Counted from the stretch's first letter, positions 2,114 to 58,538 are shown. The stretch is 64,000 bases of DNA from Adineta vaga (GCA_021613535.1 CP075493.1:13330001-13394000); one strand, 5' to 3'. Notes: generated from the sequence alone by a model not told the origin. Numbers and translations: made by a program.

Positions 2114-3567
2114 TTAGGCGATTTCGAACCTTTGAATTCGATTATTTGATCTATCAGCAACGTATAAATATTTTTCATCATTATCCATAGTAACAGTCGT
2201 TGGACTTTTGAGAAGAAATGGACTATTACCAGCTGTACCATCACAGGCACCTTTACAGAAATAGAAGACAAGTTATAGTATATAGAAGATAAGATAGATG
2301 AATCATTTTCTATTCATTACCTGCGATGGTTATTCCTTCAGAACAACCGAGACACCATCGTACAATTCGATTATTGGTTGTATCTGCTATATAGAGTGTC
2401 TGATTTTTTTTTGAAAGATAAATTCCACATGGGCCATTCAGTTGCCTAATTAATAATATAGAAAGAATATTTTATTTAGTTCATCTATCTTTTGAAACTT
2501 ACGTTGGTCCAATGCCAGCACTATTGCCTCCAGCTACAATCGTACCATTGGTTGAACCAAATGAGAATCGAAGAACTCGATGATTGAATGTATCTGCTAC
2601 ATAATAAACTCCTTCCGATTCATCCAAAACAATATCTTGTGGCTTAAATAGATGTTGAGTACCGTTACCTGATACATTCTGTTTCACCAGCTATCACCAC
2701 ACCCAAAGTAATGTTTGCCGCCCAAAACATAATACGGTTATAACTAGTGTCGGCAACGTAAAAGTTACCGTTTGAATCCAGAGTAAAAGATCCGGATTTG
2801 CCGAATTGTGTCAAATTTGCGCCACATGAAGGACTGAATAGAATGCTTTTTGTCAACGAACCATTATAATATCGTGTCATCTGACAACGATCACAATCAA
2901 TAACATACAAATTCAAGTAAGAACTATCGAAATACGCTCTTCGAGAATACAAACTCCCACTACTAGGTGCTACTTTTTTGCCGGTGGTTGCATTCGTAGA
3001 TACATAAAGTACTCGGTTATTCGTATTATCTGCAATCAACATCGAATTATCACTGTTGATGGTAATACCCCAAGGTGCGTTTAAAGTAGACAGTGAACTA
3101 CCTGCAGTTCCATTTTCAAGTCCAAATACTGTTGTACCCATGAGATATGGATACACTAAAATAAAAAAAGGTGACAGTAGATGAAAGTTTTGTTTCTCTT
3201 TCTTACCTGATATACAAACCGGAGCCGTTGTCACATCAGAACTATCAGTAGTTGATTGTTCAGTCTCTTTCGGTAATGATGGTAATTGAAAAAAGTAAAA
3301 TGTACTATTTCGATCAATCATCCATGAATAGTTCACATGAGTCAAAGATAAGTTGGAAAAAAATTCACAAGTATTATTGGAAAAGGAATTGAATGCAGAT
3401 ATATTTGTTGATGATATCATTACGCAAACACATTCTTGACTTGTACCATTCATCACAGTTACAGATGAAGAAATCGAAGGAAGACTAAGAAAAACATTCG
3501 ATATCATTCCAACTTGAATAGTATGAACATCATGTAGAATAAAACTTAGAATCAACCAATATTTCAT
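2114..3567 (-). CDS. Secreted NHL-repeat beta-propeller protein with N-terminal Cys (PAN/apple-like) module; apparent frameshift near 2680
   Basis: Signal peptide and NHL motifs (LNAPWGI..IADNTNNRV; YVADTFNHRV; LYIADTTNNRI; LYVADRSNNRIQRF). Introns at 3156-3206, about 2447-2502 and about 2255-2320. Frame change at IAGET/NVSGNG. Confidence 0.85.
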
Positions 3568-7230: not shown

Positions 7231-10200
7231 ATGTCAGGAGCAACGGAGGTCGAACAATTGAAACCGTGTGTTGTGAAAATTATGGAATTAGTTAAAGAAT
7301 GCTTGGATAAGGTCAAGTCAACGACTACAACCGATGATAAACATTTTCAAAATTCTCTGTTAAATAATAACATTTATACTTTCACATTAAATAATGAAGA
7401 AATCAATCTGTTGGATAAATTAACATATGATATTCAAACTGCAATCATTCATTTCCTACCACATTTATCATCAAATTGTATTAGTTATTTATTCGATTTT
7501 CTTCATACTTATCATTACGATTCGAAACAAAAGAAATTCATATCATCATTATCAATAGATTTTTTACATTCATTTCTTTATGAATTAAAAGGTTTATTAT
7601 CCGCACCATTGGCATTTACAGCTGCCTTTGATGGTCGAATTGATATTGTAAAAAGTTTTCTCAAAGAATATCCAACATATAAAGATAAGTCAGGCTTATG
7701 GGAAACAACATTATTATATTCCGCTGCACGAAATAACCATTTCGATCTTGTAAGATATCTTATTGAAGAAGCATATTGTTCTGTTAATGCACAAAATCAA
7801 TGTGATGTAGATTTTGCCTTAGCAACAGGAAATCCGCAAACGTATAAACCTCGACCAACGGCTGGTTCCACAGCTCTTCATGGTGCTTGTTTTAATAAAC
7901 ATTTGACTGTTGTTAAATATCTTACTGAACATGGAGCTGATTATTTCATTCGTAATCAAGCTCTTGAAACTCCTATACAAAATGGTGAACAAAAGCCTGA
8001 AATAAAGAAGTTCTTTCAAGATTATCTCATTCTTTCTTATACGGATCAACCACCACCAGCAATATTACCTGATCGACCAATTCTAGATGATGAACAACGT
8101 CCACTATGTAATTGTATGTGGGAATATAAACCGTTTCAAGATCCTAAATGGTATAAATTTACATATGCAGAAGCAATGGAATTACATAAAGTTTTATTAC
8201 CTTCAAAAGAATTTCAACCGCAAGTTTATTTAAATCCAAGCAAAGGACTTTATAGCGTGTCAATGGTTGAATTTCTTCGATCTGGAAGACATCAAGATGA
8301 TCCACAAAAGAATATGGCTTGGATTCGTTGTCGTGGTTCAAGTATTCTGAATTTTGATTGCTTTGCCATTTGGCAACTTATGCTTATTCAACATGAACAA
8401 GTCGATAAAGATACAAAAACATTTCCATCATTAAAAATCTCACAATTTCCCAATATGTTTAATAGTCGTTTTAAACTTCAATTAAATACTTGGTATCAAT
8501 GTGATTCTAAGACAAGTTCACTCATCGAAAATTCCATGAATTATCGAAGAAAAATATCTTCAATTGACATTCCATATGTTGGAAATGATTTAAAATTGAA
8601 TTTACAAACATTCGAAATTTCCAACGAGAAGAAAAGCATCTCCGGATATCTTCGTTGGATTCCACAATTGATATCAGCTAATGAAACTAATCATCAAAAG
8701 ATTGTCTATGTCGATAATTATCAACTCAATGCAAGTATTCAACCAACTCCTTTAACAACAAAACGTTTAAAAGAAGTTTCTCAAACAGATAATTCAAAAA
8801 ATCAAGATGAAAATAATGAAAATAGTTTAGATATTCTTATACCAACATTTGGAACAGGAAATGATGATGAAGATGATGATGACATTATGGAAGCTTCGAA
8901 TATTAAAATATCCGTAAGTAACGAGAGACAAAACTATCTAACATGTTTTGTTGACAAAAATTTTAGACAACATCGAAAAGTTTTGATACTTGGAGTGTAA
9001 ACGATCTTACTGAAGAAATTGCAGCGAATTCATTCCACTTGGGTCCTCGGAAAAATTCTACACAAATTCGTGAAGATTCCGAAGTATCATTCGACGATTA
9101 TTTCAATGAAAAAGTTGGAAATGTTAGTCAATTAACATTCGTTGAAAGAATAAATTCGTCTCAAAAAGATCAACTTATTATAGATTCTATTGCTAAATTA
9201 CAATCACAAATGCAAGATCCGAAATTTAAAACTGAAGTAGAACATTTATTTAAAGAAATGAAAACAATCGATTATGATAATATTGAAATGATTCTTGTTA
9301 AAAACTTTCTCTTTATTAATCTAAGATACATTATCAGTTATCTCAAAGCGAAACATCCAATCTTTAAATCTTCTCTCGATATACCGAATATTATTATTAC
9401 AGAGAAAACAAATGTTTATTGTATTTCATTTACAGGTTTGAATGTTCATCATGATGAATTCAAACGTATTCTACGACAAATGAAATTCTTATTGAATCTT
9501 ATTCAATCCGCAAAAACATACTATCAACAACAATTAAACAATACATATGAATCCATTAATCATATCATTACAAAACAGATTTATCCTTCATCCGATTGGA
9601 TATCCTATACGAAATCTTATCAAGATTTATTGAAAATGAAAATCAATGAATTTCTTCATTCATTCGATGAATATTTACTAAAAGAATCGAAATCAATCTT
9701 TGAACAAATGATAACGGAACCTTCGTTTCAAGCATGGGTTCAATTACAAAAATTAACTGATAGATATTTGAAGAAAAAACAATTAAAACCTGAATTACAA
9801 ATAATTAAACATGAAGCACTTGATCAATTCATCAAACAACATGTTCTATCCGAACGATCGAAATTTGAAACGAAACCAACAACAAAATCTTTACAAACAA
9901 TGGTGGAATTTATTGATAAAACCAAAAAACAATTTCAAACAAATCCATTGTATAATGGATGTGATCTCGAGCAATTTCGTTATATTCCAATCATATTGCA
10001 AAGAATCATCATATATTATCGATGTTTTCTTCTACAATTACCGTTATATGAATCATCAAAAGATTTATTGGACAAAATTGAAAAAAATACAGTTATTACA
10101 ATTGCAACAGCATCTGGATTAGGTAAATCAAGTTTACTACCACCATTACTCATTGCTGAAGGTTATGATAAAGTTATTGTGACACAACCTCGTCGTTTAC

Positions 10201-13200
10201 TTTGTACATCGATTTGTAATCGTGTAAATGAAACGATGACAATTAATAAGGATCAAATGAAATTGGCTGGATGGGCTGCGAATAGTGTAGAATACAATGT
10301 TAAAGGTCGAGTTTTATATTTAACAGACAGTTTATTGAAAGAACGTTTGTTGTACGATGAAAATTTTCTTACCAACGAATTGGAAGTCTCGAAATTGATC
10401 GTGTTCATTCTTGATGAAATTCATGAACAATCAATTAATATTGATCTTTGTTTAGCATTAATGATTCGTCTTCTTACAGAAAAACCACAAATTCAATCGA
10501 AAATAAAAGTGATTGTTTCATCATCAACATTAGATTCATCGATACCGAAATTAATTCTTCAATTTCCTCAAATCAAGTTCGATGAATTTCAATTACCTAC
10601 ATTAGGATCAATATATCCAATTACAAAATTTGCTCGACCAAATGAAAATATTCTCGATTTAGTCCAAGAATTATGTAAGAAACGTGAACGTGATGAACAA
10701 ATCCTATGTTTTGTTAGTAATATACTCGAAGTCTATCAATATTGTCGTCTTCTTGAAGAAATTAGTCGTGGAACAATGCGTGCATTTCCATTAATTCCAT
10801 CTCAATCAGTTCATGATCAACAACTGAATATTAAACGAGGAAATATATTCTTTGCTACACATATTGCTGAAACATCTTTAACATTTCCATCATTAACTTA
10901 TGTTATTGATACGGGAATGGTCGATATTCCGATCTATGATCTTGACAAGAAACAGACGATTACAAGGAAAATTCAAATATCACAATCAATCATTAAACAA
11001 CGAATAGGAAGACTTGGACGAACAAGACCAGGTGAATATTATTCATTGTATGAGTTTAAAGTTGATCAAAATAAATATCCCAGAGCACAAATACAACAAA
11101 TAGAATTAGTTTATCTCGAATTTTTAATAAGAAAATCGAGTATTAAACAAGGACTTTCTTATTTGAATAAATTTCTTCCAAATCCATTGAATCCACAAGC
11201 AATTACAGGAGCGATCGATGAATTAAAAAGACTAAGTAAGATAATTCATCTGCCAAGTTCTTACTTGACTTGTTCGTCTTAGATCTTCTGGATTCTCAGG
11301 AAAAATTTACAACGATAGGTATTGCTATTTCAAAATTACCTAATTTTGGTTCAATTTCCATGTCAAAATCAGTGCTTTCAGCTTTAAATGAGAATAAATG
11401 TGGTCGCGATTTAATTGTTCTTTCATCAATTTTAAATGTTTTGAGTACATCAGCGATATTAAAATCAATACCAAATTCAATGAAACGACCTGAAGGAGAT
11501 TTTATGACTTTATTAAATGTTCTAAATGAAATTCTTTTAATTAAAGAAAGTGTTCGTGCTGAACAATTTCAATTAGCAAAAGTATGTGAAGCAAAAAATC
11601 TTATGTCAATCTTACATATTCTAAAACAAGCATTGAAACGTTATGAAAATTTAGAAAAATCCTTCAATCTCTCCGATGAGTATCGAGAGAAAGCACATGT
11701 TACAAGTAATAATTGGAAGTCTATTGCCAAATCTTTATTACATGGCTATGAAGATCATGTTTTTATTTGTATGAAAGAATTATGTGGTCGAACTCATCTT
11801 TTTACTCGTTATTATTCTCTTAAAACAGATGTAGCTATTTTAGATTCTCATTCAACTTTTTCTTCTACACCTGCTTCATTAATTATTGCTCGTGATATAA
11901 GTTATTCATCAGCACTTGAAGAAAAAGCTATTCTATCATTTGTTGGAGAAATTAAATCCAATTGGATTGAATATCAATTAACAAGGGAATTACGTTTGGA
12001 AACGAAAGAAGAGGAATTCTTAACAAAAAATAATATTCTCGCAAATGTTCAACAAATATTTCCAAATGTACGAATACGTTTGAATAATCATATTTTAAAT
12101 TTAGAAGGGCTTGCTAGTGTGGTTCTTAATGCTGAACTTGACCTTTTACGACAATTAATCAGTGAAGATAGATGTAAATTCGTGAATTTCTTTAAAACCA
12201 ACGAAAAAGCTGATTATGAACGTATGCAACGAAATCTGGAAAGTGTTTCGAAAATGCCACAAATTTTTAGTTCAATGATACAACGTTGGCAAGATCAATA
12301 TCAAATGAAAATAACTGTTAATAATAATTCTTTTACTACAGAATGTGAAATCATCATTGAAGGACGACTATCAAAAATTGGACCAGTAAAAAGCGAATGT
12401 CGATCTTTTAATGGATGGTTAAAAGAATGTGCAGTTATTCGACATCCCAATGCTGGTAACAGTATACCATAATCACGTTTTATTTCTTCTTCATAGGTTT
12501 CTATTTTCATGTTTAAGGTGTTCCACCACGTATTCTTAAACCACAAATGCGTCATAATTGTCTTGATATAGAAGAGAAAATTTCGCGTGTTACTGATAGT
12601 AAACGAACATCGATGGAATTATGGAAAAGTTTAACAGGTTCAAAAGCAACACGTGAAAGTCGAATGGAAGTAGTGGCATGGATCGCTGTGTGTCAATTTG
12701 ATTGTCGATTAGAAGGTGGTTTTGTTCGTGATTGGATTGTAGGAAATCATACGGGTCGACCAAGTGGAGATCCATTATCATGGATCATATATGATAAAAA
12801 TAAATCGAATCCTCCTATTCCTGAAATGAATAAGGCATTAATTCCGTCCGATCTTGATTGTCACTTACCATTACATAAATATTTTGATATTGATCTCTTT
12901 TGTCATTATTTACGAAAATATGAAATTGATTGTAAAGTTTATCGAGGAAATTGGCGTTATGTTTTATTAATCGATGCAAATCGTAAAAGTGGAGCATTTA
13001 CAATGGATTTAATTGAACCTCATGTTGCATTAACACATGATCGGATTGATTTTGATGTTGGTGATTTATCGTTAGAAAAAGATTATACAAAAGAATTAGG
13101 TATGAGAGTTGATATACAAAATAAACCCTACTCAATTGAATTAGAAACAATTGTTGACAATATAAAAAATAAACGATTTCAAATATTACGGCCTATTGAC

Positions 13201-13915
13201 GATTTAATTAAAGAACGAATCGATAAAATGAAAAGTCGAGGCTGGACACAACGCGGACAACCATTATCAGTTATTCCAGATCCACCACAAAAATATAATG
13301 CAGTTCTTGTTCCTCTGCCAGAATCGACTGCATTATATAAATCATTAGTACAACAAATGACTTCATCTATTAGTAAATCCGTACAAGTTATCTCAATTGA
13401 ACAAATTCGAAATCCATTAGTTGAAGATGCGTATATATCAATGAAACAATTAATTCAAAAACAACGAGCAGATCAAAATCCAAATGAACGAGAATTATTT
13501 CATGGAACGAGTGGTGAAGCTATTGATGGAATATTAAATGATGGTTATGATAATCGTTATTGGGGAACAAAATATTCGAAAGGAAATTGGGGTAAGAAAA
13601 GAAACGAGAATTTCTCCAATCATAGTGGTAAATTTGATTTTCTTAGGTTATGGTGCTTATTTTGCAGAAAATCCACTCCTTTCACATGCTTTTACTTCAC
13701 CTGACCCAACAGATCAAACACGTGTTATGTATTATAATAAAGTATTATTGGGAAATGAATGGATACTTGAAAAAGTAGATAAAGATTTGATGTCTACTCC
13801 AAAAGGTTATCATTCGACGCATGGAAAGTTTCCTGGACAACCAGACTCGGATGAGTTTATTGTCTACTGTTATGGACAAGCTTTACCACATTTGAAAATA
13901 CTTTATAAAGCTTAA
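7231..13915 (+). CDS. ~2155-aa multidomain protein: ankyrin repeats, WWE-like domains, DEAH-box helicase, KH-like region, class II nucleotidyltransferase, PARP catalytic domain. Exons 7231-8913, 8967-11235, 11283-12455, 12518-13591, 13647-13915
   Basis: Five ORFs are joined in frame by four GT-AG introns (6468 nt in total). Motifs: TLLYSAARNNH/TALHGAC (ANK); WEYK...W (WWE); SGLGKS, TQPRR, DEIHE, SST, ATHIAETSLT, QRIGRLGR (helicase); GGFVRD...DLD...RIDFD (NTase); LFHGT, GYGAYFA, DEFIVY (PARP). Confidence 0.9.
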
Positions 13916-13964
13916 CTTCATTCATTTATATTTCAGAACTAAATGCTTATATGACACTTCAGTG

Positions 13965-16465: not shown

Positions 16466-17530
16466 ATGCTCAGTGGCACGGGTGCAGATTCGATTGAAAC
16501 AAGAACGGCCATGGTACGAATGATGCAAGCAATGAGACCATCTAAGAACGGAAGAATCAGCACTGGCAAGAGTATGCTCGCGCGGCGTTCCGACACAGTA
16601 CGCGATGTTGTGTTCACAAATGACACTTTATTTCCCTCTTTCAGTAATCTACCGATTTCTGGAAATGAACGCAGTCTACGAACTCATTACCGAGAGGGCT
16701 GCTTTAATACATACTTACCTATCCGTGCTTGGTTTTTTCTCGCAGAGATCACTAACCCAATTGATATTGCCGTTAAAAAAAATCAGCAGTATATCCTGGT
16801 GCGCGATATCGATGGGAGAGATAATATACGGGTTATGTTTCACAATAAATCAGCAAAAAACATGGCATTTGATTATACACTCCTCATACAAGGATATACA
16901 GTATGTATTCGTTTTGCTAGCCGCCAACAAAATGATTCCGATGTGGAAATCGATGAAAATTATAAGAAAATATACATATTTCCTACTGCTCTTCAAGTAT
17001 TACTAACAACAATGTCGGATGAAATCAATAATCATGTTCCTCTTCGACCCTGGGTTAGACCAAGCGATGCACAGATATTAGCTCATTGTATCAATAAAAC
17101 AGCGCATAAATTGCACTATGAACCTCCGGCACCGAATCATTGTTGGAATTGTAAAATGATGCCGACTAGTGATAGTGATTCAAAGTTGATGAAATGTGTT
17201 CGCTGCATGACCGCCTTGTATTGCGGTAAACTCTGCCAGACTGAGCACTGGACTGCTAGTCATAAACGTTGCTGCAAGTCCTACAAAGTTTACTTCTCTA
17301 TGCTTCAGGAAGTCAAAGAAACGCTGAATAATATGGCGAAATACTTGTTTGAGTTTGTTAGCACCGACGAGGAGGATGGCGGCGACGAGAATGATGAGGA
17401 CGAGGAGGAGGGCGACGACGAGAGTGAGGAGGACGACGATGAGAATGATGAGGAGAAGAAAAAAGAAGAAGATCGGTGTGATAAGAAACAAAAAGTTGGT
17501 GAAATGACTTCTGTTATAATATCTGAATGA
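16466..17530 (+). CDS. MYND zinc finger protein with acidic C-terminal tail (intronless)
   Basis: CWNC...LMKCVRCMTALYCGKLCQTEHW..SHKRCC is a MYND pattern, followed by a D/E tract. Confidence 0.85.
   Translation: MLSGTGADSIETRTAMVRMMQAMRPSKNGRISTGKSMLARRSDTVRDVVFTNDTLFPSFSNLPISGNERSLRTHYREGCFNTYLPIRAWFFLAEITNPIDIAVKKNQQYILVRDIDGRDNIRVMFHNKSAKNMAFDYTLLIQGYTVCIRFASRQQNDSDVEIDENYKKIYIFPTALQVLLTTMSDEINNHVPLRPWVRPSDAQILAHCINKTAHKLHYEPPAPNHCWNCKMMPTSDSDSKLMKCVRCMTALYCGKLCQTEHWTASHKRCCKSYKVYFSMLQEVKETLNNMAKYLFEFVSTDEEDGGDENDEDEEEGDDESEEDDDENDEEKKKEEDRCDKKQKVGEMTSVIISE
17366..17472 (+). repeat. GC-rich (GAN)n low-complexity tract encoding poly-Asp/Glu
   Basis: Runs of gacgaggaggatggcggcgacgag... Confidence 0.85.
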
Positions 17531-17863: not shown

Positions 17864-20563
17864 TTATTCAATAAAACCATGAAAAAATAAAATAACTGAA
17901 AATAACAAGAAAAATAAGATTAGTTTTACAGAATCAATGATCATAAATAATATAGTACGGCGTTTCAATTTCGAAATCATTCGTTTGATTTCGAATAATT
18001 TAACTAAGTGAGGATGATCTTGAGTTAATGTTTGCTCATAGATATGAGAAGACATCGTTAAGTATTTCTCTGCTTGACTATAATCTGATTTTCTATTCAA
18101 ATAAAATAATGCGAGATTTTTGTATGACAATGCCAGATCTGGATGATCAGAAGATAAAACTTTTTTCCATATTTTCAATGTTTGTTCATGATAATTTTGG
18201 CATAGATCATTGTCATCGATTTTATGACAATGAACTTGACCAATCAAATCCAAACATTTTGCTACATCGCGTTGTTCTATATCAGAGAACATGTTCTTGT
18301 AAATAGTCAATGCTTGTGTAAAATAATTCAATGCTAAATCGAGATTGAATAAATCCAAATAAACTTCACCTATATTTTTCAATGTATATGCCATATCAAT
18401 ATGATTCATCATATTCGCCTTTTCGATTAACTGAATAACTATTTCATATTGTTTTAAAGCTTGTGAATAATTTTTTTGTCGGTAAAAACATTTCCCAATA
18501 TTATTAATGGTTATTCCCATATCAATATAGTTATCCTCATTATTTAAAACTTTTCGAGCTATATCTAAACTTTGTTTGAAATATTTCATTGCTTCTACAT
18601 ATTGACACATTTTATAATAACATTTACCAATATTATTTATGTCTGTACTTAAAAATATGTGGTTGTTGGTAGGATAAAGTTTTTTATGATTTACATATGA
18701 CTTCTTCTGATAAAATAACGCTTGATTATAACGCCCCATATGATAATAAATCATACACATATTATTATAGTATTCACTTCGATCAGGATGGTCTTGAGGT
18801 ACGAAGTTTTCGATATATTCATACGATTTTTCGACATATTCCAGAGCCAAATTGTCTTGTCCTTTGTTATAATATGTTACACCGATTCTTCCAAGTATAC
18901 AACAAATAAGTCTTTGATTATTAGGATCATTCTCAACCATATGTAATCCTTTGAAATAATAGTCCAACGCAGTATCAAATTTGCTCTGACGATCATACAA
19001 TGAACCTATATAGGCTAATATTCTTCCATGTTTGTTGTTTGATGGTGGCTGGACTTGAAGACATAAATCAAGTGCAGATTCCAAATGTCTTCGGCCTAAT
19101 TCATGTTGTGTTAAACCAGTTAATGCACGTCCTAATCCTAGGTGAATATCGATTAAAGTCGAAGTATCTTTCTCATGTGGGTCGGATAACAAGTTTTCGA
19201 AGTAATAACGACATTTAAGATATTCTCCCATATCGTAAAGTAAACCACCAAATAAAACAAAGCTATCTGCTTCATCACTATTCATTTCTTTTCGTTTAAA
19301 ATCAAGATATTCTTTGGCAATATCTGCACCTTTAGAAGATGGACTCATTTGACAAATCCAATAGTTATATCTGTCATCATAAGAAACACTTTCAATTTCG
19401 AAAACTGTTCCAAGATCAAATAAGAATTCTTGTTCATCTTCAAATTGACTATAATCTGTAATATTTGCTACAATAGTTGATGGATGCAAACTTGTATCAT
19501 AATTTATTTCAAAAATAATCGATTGTAAATAACTATCATTGACATTCGAGTGAACATTATCAATACCAGCATACATTTCTGCTACTTTTTGATTTTTACT
19601 CGTTGAAAGATATCCATTCGTTGATATTAGATGACCAATACTGTCTTTTAAACGATCGATTTCATCTTGTTTTTGTTTTGTTCCTCGATAAAGTTTTATC
19701 GATTGATAATATTCTAAAACTGTTTTATGAATAGCATCTAATTGAGTACATAAATCAATTAGATAGAAACGATATGTATACAAGGATTCGACATCTTCTG
19801 TTCGTAAAGCTTTATTGATTAATTTGTATACAAAACAATCTTTTGTATACCATCTGATTGTGTTTTTGGTTGAATATTCTTTATCAAATTGGTCGATTTT
19901 TTCTAATTCTTTTTTATTTCCACGATAATAAAGACGACATTTCTGAAGCATTTCTTCTTTCGCATTTTGATCATTACTTGGCATTTTTTGTAAAACTTCT
20001 TTTAATAATTGATGCCAAATAAATGATCCTGATTCTTTCAATAGATTTCGTATTGATCGTTGACTTTGATTACATACATTAAAAATATCCATTTGTTGTT
20101 CAGCTAGTTGAATATTTTTTTGAAGACTTCTAATTAAACTATGCTGTTCAGTAAATATATCAACAATTTTATCATACACACTATTTTCCACCAATAACTT
20201 TTCATATTTGAGTTTATTCACACAAAATACAAAGATACTATCAATTTGACGTAGATTATGTATTTCTGATAATAAAATATGTGCATCATTACCCGATACA
20301 ATGAGAAAGATCTTTTCCGATTTGGTTGATTTAATAAATTGTAAACACTCATCCAATTCAGTAAAAAATAAAACATAATCATTGATTTCTCTGAGTCGAT
20401 TCTTTGTTAACTGAATATCTGGTAAATTCAATTTTATATTTCGATCAAACCATAATAGTGTAATACTTTCTTTATTTTCACGACATATTGTCCAATTTTC
20501 GTCCATCTCTATAAGCGTTTGTTCATTAGTAAAACGTTTTAACTCACAGGAATCCGATGCCAT
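17864..20563 (-). CDS. ADP-ribosyltransferase (R-S-E, exotoxin-like) + TPR array, with N-terminal receiver-like domain and C-terminal TM (intronless)
   Basis: WYT.DCFVYKLINKALR, LYRG, GYLSTS and EDEQEFLF ART motifs; about 10 TPRs (NNIGKCYY...A..YF); hydrophobic tail. Start placed at the ATG at 20563. Confidence 0.9.
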   Translation of the reverse strand: MASDSCELKRFTNEQTLIEMDENWTICRENKESITLLWFDRNIKLNLPDIQLTKNRLREINDYVLFFTELDECLQFIKSTKSEKIFLIVSGNDAHILLSEIHNLRQIDSIFVFCVNKLKYEKLLVENSVYDKIVDIFTEQHSLIRSLQKNIQLAEQQMDIFNVCNQSQRSIRNLLKESGSFIWHQLLKEVLQKMPSNDQNAKEEMLQKCRLYYRGNKKELEKIDQFDKEYSTKNTIRWYTKDCFVYKLINKALRTEDVESLYTYRFYLIDLCTQLDAIHKTVLEYYQSIKLYRGTKQKQDEIDRLKDSIGHLISTNGYLSTSKNQKVAEMYAGIDNVHSNVNDSYLQSIIFEINYDTSLHPSTIVANITDYSQFEDEQEFLFDLGTVFEIESVSYDDRYNYWICQMSPSSKGADIAKEYLDFKRKEMNSDEADSFVLFGGLLYDMGEYLKCRYYFENLLSDPHEKDTSTLIDIHLGLGRALTGLTQHELGRRHLESALDLCLQVQPPSNNKHGRILAYIGSLYDRQSKFDTALDYYFKGLHMVENDPNNQRLICCILGRIGVTYYNKGQDNLALEYVEKSYEYIENFVPQDHPDRSEYYNNMCMIYYHMGRYNQALFYQKKSYVNHKKLYPTNNHIFLSTDINNIGKCYYKMCQYVEAMKYFKQSLDIARKVLNNEDNYIDMGITINNIGKCFYRQKNYSQALKQYEIVIQLIEKANMMNHIDMAYTLKNIGEVYLDLFNLDLALNYFTQALTIYKNMFSDIEQRDVAKCLDLIGQVHCHKIDDNDLCQNYHEQTLKIWKKVLSSDHPDLALSYKNLALFYLNRKSDYSQAEKYLTMSSHIYEQTLTQDHPHLVKLFEIKRMISKLKRRTILFMIIDSVKLILFFLLFSVILFFHGFIE

Positions 20564-21277
20564 TGATACAAAATAGAATATTTCTTTTCGGTATAGTCTT
20601 TTATATTTCGTAATCTGTTGGTTTTTTTCCAAGTTAGAAATATCAAAAATAGTTCTTCATCTCACTTCCGTTTACTCATACTATTAAGGTTATACAACGC
20701 AGTGTTTTGGTGTAGTACGTGTGAATAATCAAAGCTGACGAGAAATAACTGATTCAGAAATAACAAGAAAAAACAATATTGTGATGCACATAATCATATT
20801 TCATTGTCAATCGTAAAAAAAATATTTTCGAAAAAACAAATGAAAGCGAAACCATACATTAGACTAAATGGAGAGGAGAAATAAAGAATACATCACCATA
20901 GGCTCACATTTGTGTTTTTATTATTCTTTCTATTCAACAAAATAAATATGACTCAAAGAAATAATCATCAAGTGGCGTGAACTATAGATTATGTGATTAA
21001 CCCAAAACAGAAGAAAAAGAGCAACGAAAACTAAAAAGAGCAACTAAACGCGCCGATATTAAATTGAATAGAATCTCTCTCTCATGGCTATAAAGAAAAA
21101 AAACTTCTCAAGTTACTAACTAAATGTGAGTGCAAGTGCTAAGATTGAGTTTGTATACACTCATACCTTCTCATCGACATATCTTGGATAAAAGAAACGA
21201 AGACAATACAATTGCTTGTCTGTAATATATTTTCATTTTTTTCTCAATTAACATAGGAAAAGATCAATAAACAATTT

Positions 21278-25207: not shown

Positions 25208-28200
25208 ATGGATTGTTTTCGTAGATTCAAACATCATTTATTGACTTTGAATCTTTTCGAAAATGCTAATACACATATCAATGAACTCCAAGCATCAATT
25301 GAACGTCTAACAACTCGTATTTATCTTGCTGTAGTATTGATTTTACTTACAATTTTTACAATCTATCTTTCATTTACTATTGAAACAAAAACTTATACCA
25401 TTGAAAAGCCTTCGCAAGCAAAGTACGAACTACTTCAAGAAAATTATTCATCATCACTCGAATGTCCTTGTTCAACTGTGACGATTCCACATCGAGAATT
25501 TCTATCTATTTCACCTATTTATCATGAAGTTTGCTCAAGTATTTTCGTCTCAAATGTATGGTTGACATCTTTACATAATATTAATCGAACGCGCTACTAT
25601 CAGCTGGATTTTCGAGCAAATGGTATTTCAATATTTCAACTTTTACGTACATTATGTGATTGGAACAAGCGCAATAATCAGATTGCATTGAATCAATTCG
25701 AGAGCACTCTTTTTATTTCTCCTTGTGTTTTATCACCCAAAGATTTTGCGGATAAAACTGCCTCGATATTAACAAATGTTGATCGAACATTCGTTAGGCA
25801 ACATATTCAAACATTACATGTTGTTCAAGAAAGCATGGAAGCTAATCAACTGGTACCAGCTGTTCAGACAACAGGAGTGTTACAGTTATTTTTCGATGGT
25901 CAAATTCGTCTTGTAAATGGTATTTGGAAAGATTTCTGCTGGTGTCCTCAGTATGTAAATTGTATAGACAGGATGGGACTCTACGATGATCTATTCAGTT
26001 TTCAATCAAATGGTATCTATGATGGTGATATTTCGGCACATGTGAATCTACAAGGTTTTATTACTGGTTGTTATACATTACGTGCTCTAATGTATTCGAC
26101 TCTCGAATGTCTCTATAATCAATCTTGTGTTGATCTTTTGGATCAGACAAATAATTCGTATTACAAAGCACTCACTAGAGACAAGAATACATCTACCAGT
26201 TTTTCTGATTCGGAAATGATAATTTCAGGCGATTATTTTATCTTATCTTGGCAAAAAAATAGACAATATTCTGATTATTACAAAATGTGTGCGCCAATAA
26301 ACTGTCGATACACAATTGCGCAGCATGCAGATACTTTTCATATATTGACAAATTTATTCAGTGTGTACGGAGGATTGGTAATAGTATGTCAATTTATAGT
26401 TCCATTGATTGTCAGAAAAATTCGGATATGGTGGACACAACGAGATGCACAACCTGCAACTAGAGAAGATGAAGGTATAAAAAATCTTTTCAAAAATTTC
26501 AGATATATTGAAGATTTGCTTTTCTTTGTAGTAATACCAATTCGAACTCAATTATTTCGTGTATGTCTAATTCTTCGTTCCACTCTCATTGAACTTAATG
26601 TTTTCGATGATATTATTCCTTCTCTTGATCCTCATGAAATTTACAACGGCCGTCTTGCTACTCGTATCTACATTGTTTGCTTTATCCTTATCGCTGTACC
26701 ATTATTGCTTGTTAATTTATTAACGATACGACTTCGCATGGACACCATTGAGAATCCATCGGAATTGACTTTCGAACAACTTCATGCTATTTATAATAAT
26801 TCTCTTCAATGTCCTTGCTCAGATATTGCTATGCCTTATCATGAGTTTAGTAACATCATCTACAAAATACATTCAATATGTAATGGTAGTCATTTTATCA
26901 AGTTCGATTGGTTTGTTAACTTTCCAATGATTATGAAACCTCAATTTACAATTTTGAATAGCATCTGTGAACGATCTCGCACTGCGGTAGATTTAGCTAC
27001 TGCTACATTTACATCATTAGAATTGATAACAGGACATGCATTATCACGCGAATTACTCAATACACAAGTACGTGCAGTATTTTATCAATTGAAAGCACAA
27101 ACACGAGTGGAACTTGTAACAGCAATTCAATTGAATCGAATTTTAACGTATAGTAATAAATTAATGAGAAGATATAATGTTCAAACATATCATTCACCGC
27201 AACACATTGAAACTCTTCTTAGTTCGAATAATAATAATAATAATAATAGTACATGTCACTGTGTGTTGACGCCACAGTGTATCATAGAAATAGTTCCATC
27301 ATTTTACAGAGGATGTTATGCCGTCGATGCTATTTTACTATCAACTCTCGACTGCTTTTATACTGCCGATTGTATTACTTTAATCGAATCATTTCGAATT
27401 CCGTCTATCATAGAATTAACATGTAATGCAACAGCTTTGAATCCGAATGAAACTCGATTTTTACCAAATACGACCATAGAATCGTTGCTCAATGAGTTAA
27501 TGTTAGAATTATGGGATATTCATATTAATTATACGAGTTATTACAAAAAGTGTAATCCAATCAGTTGTACTTATTCATATAAAAAACCGTACGATATATT
27601 TTCTGTACTAATTCTATTGCTTGGTTTATTCAGTGGTTTGAATGTTATATTGAAAATTCTTGTTCCATTTATTGTTAAAACTATTCGAAATTGTCTTTTT
27701 CATGGACGAATCAATTTCAATTTCAAGGCAAAACTTCTAGTATGGAATACTTTTCCTACTTACGCATCTCAACGAGGTGATATCAATCAATTGTATACAG
27801 AAAAACTTGCAACACGAATCTATGCACTAGCTTTCATTGTAAGTTTTGTCATAACAGCTGTATATAAAACAGCAACAGCACCAACGAAGAATGACATCAT
27901 ATACAATCCAACGCTAGCAACATTTGAACAATTACAAAAAAGATATGGAACAACTGTGAAGTGTCCATGCAAGGAAATTAGCATCAACTGTATAAGTAGT
28001 CAGATCTATATGGAATCTAATTTGAGTTTTTATTTTATAGATGGATCATTTGTTTCGATTTCACCTGCTTTTCATCAAGTTTGCTCGAGTTATTTGACTT
28101 CTCCTTCATGGTTATCGTTTCTTTTCAAATATTCTAATTCAACGAATAACTATCTCTTCATTCTATCTCAGTTTCAATTTCTCACGTACGTTTGTCAAAT

Positions 28201-28954
28201 AACGAATCCATTTGCTCTCAATGTCGTCTTTACTTTTACGAATGATTCATTTATTTCACCACAAACAATCGTAGAAACAACACTACGCTCGGAAGTTTCA
28301 TCTTTAATGTTGAGATTTCTCTTGACTACATCTAAATATATTGCTGAAATGATTGACTTTATTCAAGGACTTATACATGGTAGTGGTATTCTATCAGCAT
28401 TACATACGAATTGGAAATTAATTTTGAATGATCTAGATAATGTGACTATTCACACTGATCCAATTTCCTATGGAAACTGTTCCTGTGGTATATATGCTTC
28501 ATGCACACAAGTAACTGAAATTCCTGGTCTACTCATTGGTTGTTATCCCTCATCAGCAATGATGCAATCGACACTCGAATGTTTCTACAATGAAACATGT
28601 ATTTCGTTATTTTTTGGAGCGAATCAATGGCCATTACTTAATGTAAATAGTCGATCGCGTTTTTCATCATTCCATACAGTGAAATCGATTATTGATCAAT
28701 TGATGATTGATGAATGGAAGAATCATACTAATTATACGTTGTATTATGAGAAATGTGCTCCAACTTCGTGTAGTTTTTCGTATTCAGAGCGATTCAGCTT
28801 TGCTTATATGATGCTCACATTAACTAGTCTTTATGGAGGCCTGACGATGGTTTTACGTTTCATTGTTTATTATTCCGTAAAATACGGTCGAAATTTTTCT
28901 CGTCATGGACATAGAGTACGACGAGTGGATGTAAATGAAAATTATATTAGCTAA
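25208..28954 (+). CDS. Large multi-pass membrane protein with three tandem Cys-rich extracellular repeat units (bdelloid-expanded family); probable in-frame introns 26475-26531 and 27990-28040
   Basis: Three repeats of TRIY-TM...L.CPC...H.VCS...GCY...STLEC.YN..C...YY..C.P..C.Y-TM-GGL. Confidence 0.85.
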   Translation: MDCFRRFKHHLLTLNLFENANTHINELQASIERLTTRIYLAVVLILLTIFTIYLSFTIETKTYTIEKPSQAKYELLQENYSSSLECPCSTVTIPHREFLSISPIYHEVCSSIFVSNVWLTSLHNINRTRYYQLDFRANGISIFQLLRTLCDWNKRNNQIALNQFESTLFISPCVLSPKDFADKTASILTNVDRTFVRQHIQTLHVVQESMEANQLVPAVQTTGVLQLFFDGQIRLVNGIWKDFCWCPQYVNCIDRMGLYDDLFSFQSNGIYDGDISAHVNLQGFITGCYTLRALMYSTLECLYNQSCVDLLDQTNNSYYKALTRDKNTSTSFSDSEMIISGDYFILSWQKNRQYSDYYKMCAPINCRYTIAQHADTFHILTNLFSVYGGLVIVCQFIVPLIVRKIRIWWTQRDAQPATREDEGIKNLFKNFRYIEDLLFFVVIPIRTQLFRVCLILRSTLIELNVFDDIIPSLDPHEIYNGRLATRIYIVCFILIAVPLLLVNLLTIRLRMDTIENPSELTFEQLHAIYNNSLQCPCSDIAMPYHEFSNIIYKIHSICNGSHFIKFDWFVNFPMIMKPQFTILNSICERSRTAVDLATATFTSLELITGHALSRELLNTQVRAVFYQLKAQTRVELVTAIQLNRILTYSNKLMRRYNVQTYHSPQHIETLLSSNNNNNNNSTCHCVLTPQCIIEIVPSFYRGCYAVDAILLSTLDCFYTADCITLIESFRIPSIIELTCNATALNPNETRFLPNTTIESLLNELMLELWDIHINYTSYYKKCNPISCTYSYKKPYDIFSVLILLLGLFSGLNVILKILVPFIVKTIRNCLFHGRINFNFKAKLLVWNTFPTYASQRGDINQLYTEKLATRIYALAFIVSFVITAVYKTATAPTKNDIIYNPTLATFEQLQKRYGTTVKCPCKEISINCISSQIYMESNLSFYFIDGSFVSISPAFHQVCSSYLTSPSWLSFLFKYSNSTNNYLFILSQFQFLTYVCQITNPFALNVVFTFTNDSFISPQTIVETTLRSEVSSLMLRFLLTTSKYIAEMIDFIQGLIHGSGILSALHTNWKLILNDLDNVTIHTDPISYGNCSCGIYASCTQVTEIPGLLIGCYPSSAMMQSTLECFYNETCISLFFGANQWPLLNVNSRSRFSSFHTVKSIIDQLMIDEWKNHTNYTLYYEKCAPTSCSFSYSERFSFAYMMLTLTSLYGGLTMVLRFIVYYSVKYGRNFSRHGHRVRRVDVNENYIS

Positions 28955-40046: not shown

Positions 40047-41504
40047 TTACTCCTTCAAGATTTTTTTTGTTGACCACACTAACCATTTTTGAGAACAAGT
40101 TAATGGTCCATTCATAATTTGTTTCGTCAGTGTCATATAATCTTTCAATGAGCAGTAATTCGTTGTCACGTTAGCTGTTGTAACATGATCGACCAACAGT
40201 TGTTTATATCTGTTTAGTATTAGCTTTATGTACAGTTTTGCGGCTGATCTTGATAGATATTTTCCTTGGAAATGTATTCCGGATTGCACTATTCTTTGCA
40301 TATGTTCATCATTTTGTCTTGCCCAAAGAACTTTCTTACGAAGATCTTGCAAATTAATATCGATTGGAACGTAATGTATGTAGGGAATTAGCAATGGATC
40401 TAACCAACGTTTCCAAATAGATTTCTGACTGAAGAAAACAGATCCTGAACCAATTATATGCCCTTTACGAGCTGAACCAGCTGAACCATCAATATCAAGA
40501 ATATATTTGTATGCCGATTGTTCTTCAAATGACATAAACGGAACACGAGTAATATTTGTTTGTGCTTCTATTTCTTCTGTGGTCGGTGGATGATCATTCA
40601 ATCCTTGACGTTTTTTTCGTTTCCCATACACAAATGGAGGTATATCCCAATCTAAATGATTGAATTCTGTAATGCCGATATCCATAACGTCTGAATTCAT
40701 CATAGATAGTTTTACGGCTTTGACACGAGTACATGAAAACCAATTGTTCGAATGAAAATTGTAGCAATCTGCTTTACCTCGAAATAGAGCAAGTTCTTTT
40801 TTCTGCTTCCAAGACACTAAGTGTGAATTATTAGGCCATCTATAAGTACCATGCGAGCCAAACTGCATGGTATCTGGTAAGAGTAAATCTGAATGAAAAT
40901 CACTGGTCATAAATGTAAACACAGGTAGCCCATGTGCAATTGCATGTGAATGAAGAGCTGAACAAGGTCCATGTAGAATTAGAATGAAATCAACACCATC
41001 TGCTGTTGACTTCCAATCATCGAAATATCCTTCCACTATCATTTCCCCTAATATCTGCATAAATGTTGCAAGACGCTGATTAAGATATCTGTAAGGTACG
41101 CGTGTAAGCTGTCGGTACAGTAGGTGTTTTCCACGTTGAACAATTCGAATTCGAACACCTAAATTGGTATTTGCTCCAATAAATTCCATAGCATTGAGTG
41201 AGTCTTGTGTGATCCGAAAATAACCTTGTCCAGGTTGTTGTTCATCAGTGTTATATGATGGTACACCAAAATAGGGTTCAAGTTGAGTAGTTATCATGTT
41301 CGAAAATGCTGCCTCTACTGTTTGAGTATCTTCATAATCTAGTGCATGAAGAAAGTCCATCTGGTCTTTAGTAGAACGAAGAGAGTAACATGCGCTACGA
41401 TTTCTATCGGCATATAGTACTGCTGTCAAAATAGCACCACAGACAAAGACACCAATCAGTACTATCCATTGAAGAAATGATTGAAGTAGAATCCGGCGTA
41501 TCAT
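40047..41504 (-). CDS. Glycosyltransferase family 90 (CAP10/POGLUT/KDELC-like), intronless type II membrane protein
   Basis: W..KK..ALFRG, YKYILDIDG, SGSVFF, LIPYIHYVP, WA..ND motifs; N-terminal TM. Confidence 0.88.
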   Translation of the reverse strand: MIRRILLQSFLQWIVLIGVFVCGAILTAVLYADRNRSACYSLRSTKDQMDFLHALDYEDTQTVEAAFSNMITTQLEPYFGVPSYNTDEQQPGQGYFRITQDSLNAMEFIGANTNLGVRIRIVQRGKHLLYRQLTRVPYRYLNQRLATFMQILGEMIVEGYFDDWKSTADGVDFILILHGPCSALHSHAIAHGLPVFTFMTSDFHSDLLLPDTMQFGSHGTYRWPNNSHLVSWKQKKELALFRGKADCYNFHSNNWFSCTRVKAVKLSMMNSDVMDIGITEFNHLDWDIPPFVYGKRKKRQGLNDHPPTTEEIEAQTNITRVPFMSFEEQSAYKYILDIDGSAGSARKGHIIGSGSVFFSQKSIWKRWLDPLLIPYIHYVPIDINLQDLRKKVLWARQNDEHMQRIVQSGIHFQGKYLSRSAAKLYIKLILNRYKQLLVDHVTTANVTTNYCSLKDYMTLTKQIMNGPLTCSQKWLVWSTKKILKE

Positions 41505-57425: not shown

Positions 57426-58538
57426 ATGATTCGAACATATTTCGCTGTCACTATTGTACTCATCAAACTTGTTGTTTGTTTATCGTCATCGAACAATAAT
57501 CTTACAGCGACAAAAACCATCGAAATTCGTCCTGGAATTACATATGAATATCTTTATGTCAAAGCTATCAATAATAAACCAACTCTCTTATTTCTTCATG
57601 GGTTTCCTTCATCTTATCATTCGTGGCGTCATCAAACTAACTATTTTTCACAACAAGGTTACGGATGTCTCGTACCTAACTTAATGGGCTATGGAAAAAC
57701 TTATTCTCCATCAAACGACAATGAATACAATAGTAAAGCAATGATCGATCATCTCATGATTTTACTCGACCGTGTTGGTCTTAGTAATTCATCCGTTTTC
57801 GTTATTGGACATGACTGGGGTGCACGAACAGCGAGTCGATTTGTTTTGTATCATCCTGAACGAACAATCAGTGCTATACTTCTTAGTGTTGCTTATAGTC
57901 CACCAGTGAAATTTAATTTAAGCCTCGCTCTTCAACAATCTCTACAAGTAAATGGTTATGAAAGTATTGGATATTGGGAATTCTTTCAAGCGAATGATGC
58001 AGCAGACATTATTGAGAGAAATGTCGATAGTTTTATTGATCTTCTCTTTGCTAGTAATACAACACTTTCAAAAACAGATTTTGCTCCAGTTAATAAAGTT
58101 CGACAGTGGTTAACCAATGGAAAACGAACAAATCGATCTTTATACATGACACAAGATGACTATTCTACAGTTCGTGCATATCTTTCTGCGGGAATGCAAC
58201 AAAAATTGAATTGGTTCAAAGCAGTAATTGCTAATGTCGATTGGAATTATGAGAAAACGCTTAATGCAACAGTACAACGACCTGTACTTTATATTGGAGG
58301 TAGTAAAGATTATATCGGTATTATTGGTGCTGCTGAGCGACAAAAGAATTATATTAAAAATCTAGAAATAGTCGAAGTTGACACTGGTCATTGGGTAATG
58401 GAAGAAAAACCAAATGATGTCAATCGAGAGATTGATCGTTGGATTAAGAAAATTATGACACACAACTCTGCTACGACTTCTTTTCTATTGAAATCCTATA
58501 TCTATTCTCTTATTCTGTATTTGATTTTAATCATTTAA
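57426..58538 (+). CDS. Epoxide hydrolase-like alpha/beta hydrolase with signal peptide and hydrophobic C-tail (intronless)
   Basis: LHGFP, GYG, IGHDWG (Asp nucleophile), GGSKD, TGHWV (His). Confidence 0.9.
   Translation: MIRTYFAVTIVLIKLVVCLSSSNNNLTATKTIEIRPGITYEYLYVKAINNKPTLLFLHGFPSSYHSWRHQTNYFSQQGYGCLVPNLMGYGKTYSPSNDNEYNSKAMIDHLMILLDRVGLSNSSVFVIGHDWGARTASRFVLYHPERTISAILLSVAYSPPVKFNLSLALQQSLQVNGYESIGYWEFFQANDAADIIERNVDSFIDLLFASNTTLSKTDFAPVNKVRQWLTNGKRTNRSLYMTQDDYSTVRAYLSAGMQQKLNWFKAVIANVDWNYEKTLNATVQRPVLYIGGSKDYIGIIGAAERQKNYIKNLEIVEVDTGHWVMEEKPNDVNREIDRWIKKIMTHNSATTSFLLKSYIYSLILYLILII

Follow-up and report, generated by a model that had tools for sequence, protein, structure and literature searches.

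In the TRAMP complex, three proteins (Trf4/5, Mtr4 and Air1/2) bring together a non-canonical 3'-end nucleotidyltransferase (NTase), an RNA helicase that works 3' to 5', and small modules for RNA binding. Helicases of the DEAH/RHA family load at a single-stranded 3' tail and translocate in the 3'-to-5' direction, and YTHDC2, a member of this group, also has ankyrin (ANK) repeats. The CCA-adding enzymes owe their choice of substrate and nucleotide to their neck, body and tail domains and to the EDxxR motif (motif D). Among the PARPs, members of the PARP12/ZAP (PARP13)/PARP14 clade have WWE-type modules upstream of the PARP domain, and PARP14 carries a KH-type fold on the same chain; the catalytic Glu is replaced in PARP12 and PARP14 and absent in ZAP. 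Here we describe a gene that joins domains of all these kinds in a single chain. It lies on the plus strand at 7231-13915 of a 64,000-nucleotide stretch of the genome of the bdelloid rotifer Adineta vaga (GCA_021613535.1 CP075493.1:13330001-13394000), which we call the window and from whose first letter positions are counted.

Each domain of the encoded protein is of a known kind, and it is the joining of a DEAH/RHA helicase, a class II-type NTase head and a PARP that was undescribed in our literature search. That search found neither a DEAH/RHA helicase with a C-terminal NTase or PARP nor the three-part architecture, in agreement with the original prediction, made from the DNA sequence alone, which knew of no characterised protein of this composition. 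A survey of PARP systems across life likewise mentions no helicase fusion (PMC4245714).

We read the gene by hand from the sequence as 2155 codons in five exons, ending with a TAA stop at 13913-13915. The four introns are 47-62 nt long, each runs from GT to AG, and the frame is kept through every one. GenBank holds a hypothetical protein of Adineta vaga, I4U23_004378 (2155 aa; P0017 in our searches), that contains all five exon translations in order, at residues 1-561, 562-1317, 1319-1708, 1710-2066 and 2068-2155. The public annotation is therefore the same gene model, and is identical to the four canonical introns and single 2155-aa frame that had been predicted; the helicase, NTase and PARP motifs quoted with that prediction were likewise all present in the translations. 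Exons were searched singly, and steps that needed the whole protein used the database entry, which is identical to the gene model. The parts of the gene are as follows.

7231..8913, plus strand: exon 1, codons 1-561, encoding the N-terminus, ankyrin repeats, two WWE-like modules and an acidic low-complexity linker; an exact match to residues 1-561 of the GenBank protein.
8914..8966, plus strand: intron 1, 53 nt, GTAAGT..TTTTAG, from the sequence and the identical public model.
8967..11235, plus strand: exon 2, codons 562-1318 (only base 1 of the last codon), encoding about 350 residues without a Pfam match and then the DEAH helicase core.
11236..11282, plus strand: intron 2, 47 nt, GT..AG, with a spliced joint 11235|11283 in sequencing run X1 and contiguous in the DNA run X9.
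11283..12455, plus strand: exon 3, codons 1318-1709, encoding the helicase C-terminal domains, a KH-like fold and a second alpha/beta module.
12456..12517, plus strand: intron 3, 62 nt, GT..AG, with spliced contigs in X1, X2 and X11 and unspliced in X9.
12518..13591, plus strand: exon 4, codons 1709-2067, encoding the NTase head and the N-terminal half of the PARP domain.
13592..13646, plus strand: intron 4, 55 nt, GT..AG, dividing the PARP domain, with spliced contigs in X1, X2 and X11 and unspliced in X9.
13647..13915, plus strand: exon 5, encoding the C-terminal half of the PARP domain (Pfam PARP, E 4e-6), with the triad Tyr in GAYFA (codon 13658-13660) and the Glu in DEFIVY (codon 13853-13855).

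We mapped contigs from four public sequencing runs onto 8500-13950, with X1 and X2 coming from one study and X11 from another. X9 (about 100x) is contiguous through introns 2-4 and has no spliced joints, and so behaves as DNA. Contigs from X1, X2 and X11 skip 12456-12517 and 13592-13646 exactly, and 11236-11282 is skipped in X1 contigs only, which indicates that the junctions from helicase to exon 3, from exon 3 to the NTase and between the PARP halves are used in RNA. RNA across all four junctions had been proposed as a check on the gene model, and it supports introns 3 and 4 from two studies and intron 2 from one of them; the intron 1 joint falls outside the RNA contig coverage, and is supported only by its canonical sites, the public annotation and a colinear intron-free paralogue. 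No single contig spans the whole transcript.

The paralogue (L017:1998-8333, on C5) is an uninterrupted open reading frame (ORF) of 2111 codons that carries Ank, DEAD, Helicase_C and PARP. It is colinear with exon 1 (44% identity), exon 2 (40%), exon 3 (43%) and exon 4 (57%), and the alignment is gap-free at the exon 2/3 and exon 3/4 junctions. At the intron 1 junction only the diverged low-complexity linker is unaligned, with about 111 residues here and 125 in the paralogue. This intron-free frame gives independent support for the whole fusion. Thus, 7231-13915 is a single expressed gene that encodes one protein of 2155 residues. From the N-terminus this protein comprises ankyrin repeats, two WWE-like modules, the acidic linker, a region of about 350 residues, the helicase, the KH-like fold, the alpha/beta module, the NTase head and the PARP domain. 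The domains lie as follows; that of the PARP C-terminal half is given with exon 5 above.

7618..7980, plus strand: ankyrin repeats, residues about 130-250 (Pfam Ank_2 E 3.9e-15, Ank E 1.4e-12).
8098..8730, plus strand: two tandem WWE-like modules, residues about 290-500, with W/E/R positions invariant across the family.
10038..11235, plus strand: DEAH/RHA helicase core (RecA1 and RecA2), with motifs I SGLGKS, Ia TQPRR, II DEIH, III SST, V THIAETSLT and VI QRIGRLGR.
11285..11968, plus strand: winged-helix, ratchet (HA2) and OB-fold domains, exon 3 residues 1-228, from the AlphaFold2 (AF2) model, VIA and Foldseek.
11966..12169, plus strand: KH type I-like fold without GXXG, exon 3 residues 228-295, beta-alpha-alpha-beta-beta-alpha.
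12182..12454, plus strand: second alpha/beta module (helix-helix-strand-strand-helix), exon 3 residues about 300-390, from AF2 secondary structure.
12637..13269, plus strand: class II-type NTase head, with GGFVRD at 12715-12732, DLD at 12850-12858 and R-I-D-F-D at 13042-13056.
13315..13591, plus strand: N-terminal half of the PARP catalytic domain (Pfam PARP), with the triad His in HGT (codon 13501-13503).

The helicase core (exon 2 residues 357-756) matches Prp22, Prp16, HrpA and DHX8 at E 3e-27 to 1e-23 in a phmmer search against the Protein Data Bank (PDB), is matched also by Pfam DEAD and Helicase_C, and has every motif expected of the DEAH helicase that had been called at this locus. Pfam models for HA2 and OB found no match in this copy. 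The AF2 model of exon 3 (predicted local distance difference test, pLDDT, 90.8) has an N-terminal unit that in VIA aligns with the helicase-associated domain of DHX8 (3i4u, Z 21.1), HrpA (19.9) and Prp43 (19.4), and in Foldseek with Prp22 at E 6e-9. Judged from motifs and modelled fold, the DEAH/RHA helicase is complete, with RecA1/2, winged-helix, ratchet and OB domains, and is predicted to unwind RNA. In having a complete core with all three accessory domains it resembles DHX36, DHX9/MLE, YTHDC2 and HrpA; unlike in YTHDC2, the ankyrin repeats are N-terminal and not inserted in the helicase core.

The NTase region is recognised by its fold. Against Pfam, PHROGs and NCBIfam, and with phmmer/hmmsearch against the PDB, every sequence match was at chance level or below threshold (DUF5769, E 8e-4; phrog_1614 'nucleotidyltransferase', E 0.15-0.19; noise from beta-lactamases), and a family profile of the domain found nothing in the PDB. 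PF01743 (PolyA_pol) did not match this copy at E up to 1, and matched one of 40 relatives at E 0.062. An AF2 model built from a 40-copy alignment reached a pLDDT of 93.8 and a predicted TM-score (pTM) of 0.91, and its top Foldseek matches in the PDB were all Pol-beta NTases, namely FAM46C, class II tRNA NTases, a CCA-adding enzyme, Cid1, TUT7 and GLD-2 (probability 1.0, TM 0.37-0.44). In VIA, a search independent of Foldseek, class II heads came first: 3wfo at Z 9.5 (170 aligned, root-mean-square deviation (rmsd) 3.8), 3aql at 9.1 and 3h37 at 8.9, with 4wby (7.8), 9kma (7.3), 1miv (7.0) and 2la3, a 'CCA-adding enzyme head domain' (6.2), further down. Eight of the best ten VIA matches are class II CCA/poly(A) polymerase (PAP) heads (Z 9.5-5.1) and two are FAM46/TENT5 poly(A) polymerases (FAM46B, Z 8.9), while MenT, LinB, ANT, cGLR, CdnD and OAS scored Z 5 or below. 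The alignments cover approximately the first 200 residues of class II enzymes that are 390-520 residues long.

The motifs point the same way. GGFVRD occupies exon 4 residues 66-71 and DLD residues 111-113, whose two Asp are D1820 and D1822 of the GenBank protein; across the 40-copy alignment G66, F68, R70, D71 and D113 are invariant, D111 and the D177 of R-x-D-F-D are kept in at least 90% of copies, and nearly every row retains an acidic residue in F-T-x-[DE]-L-I-E-P-H. Motif B reads R-I-D-F-D-V-G-D here and x-D-F-D-V-N-N-L in the family consensus, to be compared with a class II motif B that we take to be of the RRD-F-T-I-N-A type. Sequence and model thus support a head closest in fold to the class II CCA-adding enzymes and poly(A) polymerases, and the predicted class II identity is borne out at the level of fold (Z 9.5-7.0) and motif, for the head only; the GGFVRD region, whose failure to fold as a Pol-beta NTase would have counted against the prediction, is modelled as exactly that. 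With class II tRNA NTases and bacterial PAP I the rotifer domain shares the head fold (Z 9.5 for 3wfo to 7.0 for 1miv), the helix that bears GGxVRD and the DxD metal ligands, together with a candidate motif B resembling R-x-D-F-x-x-N. It differs from them in escaping detection by Pfam, in sitting inside a giant protein and in an insert, about 35 residues long, that separates GGxVRD from DxD in most members; among the 40 aligned copies the exception is the distant P0192, where the spacing is the canonical 10 residues. Neck, body and tail domains were not found, and the translation contains no EDxxR. The NTase domain ends about 60 residues past motif B and leads directly into the PARP domain.

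Outside the family, the nearest neighbours of the NTase domain are NTases of giant viruses and Gad2-like NTases of phages. Foldseek against BFVD gave E 3e-7 to proteins of Moumouvirus, Klosneuvirus and Tupanvirus, and a Nucleocytoviricota cluster in the Atlas matched at TM 0.61. The phage Gad2-like NTases had a language-model feature score of 0.95 (181 of 256 features shared) and Atlas TM values of 0.53 and 0.45, and Pfam PF26128 (Gad2) itself had no match in this copy or its relatives. Likeness to DUF5769, a name that our search did not find in any paper, shows as sub-threshold matches in 29 of 40 family members. Unlike the rotifer protein, those of the viruses either are short or carry a RING, F-box or BTB fusion in place of helicase or PARP, and identity is 9-22%.

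The PARP domain is annotated on the database entry as PF00644. Because intron 4 splits the domain, its halves were scored separately in our exon searches, at 24.1 and 26.8 bits. Taken whole, the domain is closest to PARP12 (E 4e-13), followed by PARP14, PARP10 and PARP15 (to E 5e-8) and the tankyrases. Its triad is H2037, Y2071 and E2136. Among 47 family members the His and Tyr are present in all and the Glu in 46, within E-[YF]-I-V-Y. The His and Tyr columns align with PARP12, and from the E-Y-I-V-Y motif we take the Glu to lie opposite E988 of PARP1. The PARP domain with an intact H-Y-E triad that had been predicted is therefore present, and its residues suggest that it is apparently active. 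The upstream WWE-like modules and the RNA-binding context are also points of likeness to the PARP12/ZAP/PARP14 clade, as is, for PARP14, the KH-type fold. The rotifer protein differs from that clade in lacking CCCH fingers and macrodomains, in having a full DEAH helicase and an NTase head, and in keeping the catalytic Glu.

The smaller modules fared less evenly. The ankyrin call was secure (Ank_2 E 4e-15). The predicted WWE domain is weak in this copy, where Pfam WWE (PF02825) scores 14.7 bits against a cut-off of 21.1 (E 0.04-0.13), and is credible for the family, in which 22 of 33 homologous segments reach E 1 or better, the best at 5e-5; it is plausible from these scores that residues about 290-500 are WWE-like. 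The KH call held as a fold, which in VIA matched KH1 of PCBP1 at Z 9.6 (69 aligned, rmsd 2.5), KH2 of MEX3C at 9.1, the KH domain of PNPase at 8.9 and many KH domains of Vigilin, KSRP and FUBP (Z 9.6-8), and did not hold for the GXXG loop, since the loop between helices 240-248 and 251-258 reads K-N-N-I; Pfam KH had no match in this copy. The second alpha/beta module was spanned, with exon 3 searched whole, only by an alignment to the tandem KH of N4BP1 (Z 7.8, poor rmsd), and in the model is possibly a second KH-like unit. Residues 1-130 and 562-918 have no Pfam match.

The gene is a member of an old multi-copy family with conserved domain order. An exhaustive HMMER search of 1.84 billion representatives returned 162 relatives of the NTase domain at E up to 0.001, so that the family of this domain is small. 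About 12 of its loci are in the A. vaga genome (100.8-Mb assembly, six contigs), and 79 clusters of relatives are in Adineta, Rotaria and Didymodactylos, the named relatives being all bdelloids (Adineta vaga, A. ricciae, A. steineri, Rotaria species and Didymodactylos). An architecture search, which the original prediction had suggested across eukaryotes and giant viruses, found the helicase-NTase-PARP order in all bdelloid genera sampled, in an MMETSP transcript (P0120) and in environmental contigs, and found giant-virus NTases without helicase or PARP. Apart from that transcript the distant members come from environmental or Logan contigs that are eukaryote-like; they are 22-38% identical in the same regions, keep the order, and in two cases also have ANK. 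Two environmental proteins (P0144 and P0077) carry a WW domain ahead of the helicase, stop directly behind the NTase and have no PARP, which tells us that the helicase-NTase pair can exist without PARP. No relative turned up when the viral contigs of IMG/VR were scanned with the family alignment.

A FastTree phylogeny of the helicase-to-NTase region (53 rows) places this copy in a subclade with 100% support that holds A. steineri, A. ricciae, a pair of A. vaga copies on C4 and four proteins of Rotaria; its sister is Didymodactylos. Adineta and Rotaria are likewise mixed in at least six further subclades, making at least seven in all, and the family therefore diversified before the genera split. 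That the domain order is conserved in at least seven old bdelloid subfamilies, as well as in distant sequences of 22-38% identity, argues that the three activities work together.

We also examined variation within this copy, using the 40 best-supported allelic or strain differences between the reference and the contigs, a small tool-selected subset. Twenty-two are synonymous, 17 nonsynonymous and one intronic (pN/pS about 0.2). Their distribution is uneven: codons 562-1193, covering the pre-helicase region and helicase, have 13 nonsynonymous and 3 synonymous differences, and codons 1550-2093, from the KH-like module through the NTase to the PARP, have 4 and 16. This indicates that the C-terminal enzymatic part is constrained and that the N-terminal/helicase half is fast-changing.

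What might such a protein do? We propose that it would act on RNA 3' ends. With its conserved catalytic carboxylates, the fused NTase head would extend the RNA 3' end by untemplated nucleotides, and the resulting tail would create or extend a loading site for the helicase, as happens with the separate Trf4 and Mtr4 of TRAMP and in bacterial PAP I decay. ADP-ribosylation by the PARP domain could follow, with the protein itself, its partner proteins or the ends of nucleic acids as targets, and the WWE-like modules may read ligands of the ADP-ribose type. The original prediction had likewise supposed a protein that would sense or unwind RNA, tail it or make a signal, and ADP-ribosylate targets with feedback through WWE. 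The comparison with TRAMP is one of functional analogy only, since that complex has a Ski2-like helicase, an NTase of the Cid1/Trf4 branch (3nyb, Z 3.4) and no PARP or WWE. Another way to view the gene is through its family: its many copies and diversifying pattern point to surveillance of RNA, against viruses or transposons, as the likeliest role, and a watch over viral, transposon or aberrant RNA fits both the copy number and the variation. On our analysis, a single-chain RNA 3'-end enzyme that combines helicase, tailing and ADP-ribosylation and serves in RNA surveillance against viruses or transposons is an evenly balanced proposition.

A bolder form of this proposal, which we hold only tentatively and think doubtful as a whole, is that the protein would be an ancient eukaryotic surveillance or immune enzyme that acts on foreign or aberrant RNA, in which it tails the 3' end, loads and unwinds, and places on the RNA end or on proteins an ADP-ribose mark that is read by its own WWE modules. 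It would be a one-protein counterpart of TRAMP plus ZAP/PARP12, with an NTase of common ancestry with those of giant viruses and the Gad2-like group. If the model holds, RNA 3'-end tailing would be linked with ADP-ribosylation in one enzyme, an invertebrate and possibly protist branch would be added to the PARP-based antiviral repertoire, and there would be a handle on the function of many giant-virus and phage NTases, which are the nearest structural kin. At about 450 residues and with a confident model, the NTase-PARP fragment is tractable for biochemistry.

Several observations weigh against a surveillance enzyme of this kind. The NTase region fails every sequence profile and is recognised by fold only, and without neck, body, tail and EDxxR the head could serve for binding, or could act on an acceptor other than RNA. 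Beside motif B this copy reads D-F-D-V-G-D where relatives read D-F-D-V-[NS]-N. The two candidate recognition elements have weaknesses of their own, in the sub-threshold WWE score of this copy and in the loss of the nucleic-acid-binding GXXG loop from the KH-like fold. Run types were guessed ('RNA?'), with the RNA nature of X1, X2 and X11 taken from their spliced joints. Finally, amino-acid variation in the helicase half is near neutral and the terminal branch of this copy is three times longer than that of its closest orthologue, the A. steineri relative (0.39 vs 0.13), which together could reflect relaxed constraint rather than diversifying selection.

The gene might instead be a factor in poly(ADP-ribose) signalling or genome maintenance. 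The PARP and WWE-like modules would then serve the response of bdelloids to DNA damage by desiccation or radiation, the task of the helicase would be to resolve R-loops or other structures in nucleic acids, and the NTase would be accessory. The H-Y-E triad is the form found in poly-ADP-ribose-forming PARPs, and the E-Y-I-V-Y of PARP1 is the same motif as that of the family. PARP genes and the Gene Ontology term protein ADP-ribosylation are also among the stress-responsive sets in A. vaga transcriptomes, with gene identifiers that are not mappable to this gene (PMC12220480). However, the domain is closest in sequence to the PARP12/10/14/15 clade and not to PARP1-3, Pfam found no DNA-binding, BRCT or zinc-finger DNA-break modules, and the nearest relatives of the helicase are RNA helicases. 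We regard such a role as unlikely.

Slightly less likely again is that the family is functional and that this chromosome 1 copy is a drifting paralogue, which is losing constraint and may be partly inactive. The long terminal branch and the 13 nonsynonymous to 3 synonymous differences in codons 562-1193 would be expected of such a copy, as would the G-D in place of [NS]-N beside NTase motif B. Helicase motif V adds to these: it canonically reads T-N-I-A-E-T, and codon 1193 (10860) encodes His in the reference, giving T-H-I-A-E-T, and Asn in the X1, X9 and X11 contigs, so that the other haplotype or strain has the canonical residue. Against drift, the 2155-codon frame is intact with all splice sites canonical, transcripts are correctly spliced, the catalytic residues of helicase, NTase and PARP are all present, and the NTase-PARP half has a strong synonymous excess. 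An immune gene would likewise show a fast-evolving sensor half.

The best fold matches of the NTase head are tRNA 3'-end enzymes, and this raises the possibility of a toxin-like effector directed at tRNA, in which the CCA-type head, once activated by the helicase or sensor part, would modify tRNA 3' ends in the manner of MenT or AbiEii and stop translation in an infected cell, with the PARP as second effector. MenT/TglT and AbiEii do occur lower in the fold lists (Z 3.8-5.0, TM 0.45), and the phage Gad2-like NTases are the nearest by language-model features. Such similarity is, however, much weaker than that to CCA/PAP heads, and the protein is without a tRNA-binding body or tail domain, which leaves a tRNA effector improbable.

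We give still less credence to a nucleotide second-messenger synthase, in which RNA sensing would lead the NTase to make an oligonucleotide signal, cyclic or linear, as cGAS/CD-NTases or OAS do. The original prediction had offered a nucleotide signal beside RNA tailing, and the Pol-beta superfamily fold is shared and the multidomain context immune-like. This option is weakened by the fold scores, with Cv-cGLR1 at Z 4.1, CdnD02 at 3.9 and OAS2 at 3.6 against 9.5-7.0 for the CCA/PAP heads, and by GGxVRD..DxD..RxDF, a signature that we take to be of class II tRNA NTases and not of CD-NTases. Thus, the modelled fold would suit 3'-end tailing better than nucleotide signalling, and CD-NTase identity was rejected on its low scores (Z 3.6-4.1).

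Lastly, a mis-fused annotation, in which two or more adjacent genes were wrongly joined through inferred introns, draws on the missing reads at intron 1 and the absence of one full-length contig, and we reject it as highly improbable given the spliced contigs at junctions 2-4, the intron-free paralogue with all parts in one frame, dozens of relatives of 2000-2300 residues in the same order, and distant homologues that are single ORFs on transcript-like contigs.

Other copies of the family show its recent history. Two copies on C4, at 9886565-9887344 (plus strand) and 9905907-9906685 (minus strand; L002, L008, L012), are inverted and about 20 kb apart; the chromosome 4 paralogues have about 60% protein identity to the gene described here, a distance at which synonymous sites are saturated. 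They are probably the proteins P0014 and P0060, near-identical in the tree (terminal branches 0.002 and 0.016), and the pair looks like a recent inverted duplication or gene conversion. NTase copies at C6:36566-37329 (L013, L015, L016), only 36 kb from the contig end, and at C3:18819394-18820119 (L011) have in-frame stops or frame changes and are likely pseudogenised members. On a 36-kb environmental contig, a gene with WWE and an Exo_endo_phos nuclease/phosphatase domain (L020:16446-18473, plus strand) lies about 550 nt downstream of the distant helicase-NTase-PARP homologue P0113, and so places another enzyme linked to WWE next to a member of the family.

Within the gene itself, contigs from all four runs, including the DNA run, depart from the reference beyond about 8809, in the acidic low-complexity linker, which is probably an allelic indel or a divergent haplotype.

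The window is AT-rich (about 30% G+C), and nothing among the neighbouring genes suggests an operon-like functional cluster with the PARP gene. Those identified by Pfam include the following.

2665-3567, minus strand: NHL-repeat protein.
16466-17530, plus strand: MYND zinc finger protein.
40047-41504, minus strand: family 90 glycosyltransferase.
57426-58538, plus strand: alpha/beta hydrolase.

An uninterrupted ORF of 1248 codons at 25208-28954 (plus strand) has no Pfam match at E up to 0.001. At 17864-20632 (minus strand), 4 kb downstream of the PARP gene and on the opposite strand, lies an ORF of 922 codons for an ADP-ribosyltransferase of R-S-E type (ADPrib_exo_Tox E 8e-8, ART E 2e-5) with many TPR_12 repeats (E 1e-48) behind it, a second and unrelated NAD+-using enzyme. 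At 61786-62907 (plus strand) is a MACPF/perforin-like domain (MACPF_1 E 1e-22), from a pore-forming gene of immune type or horizontally acquired.

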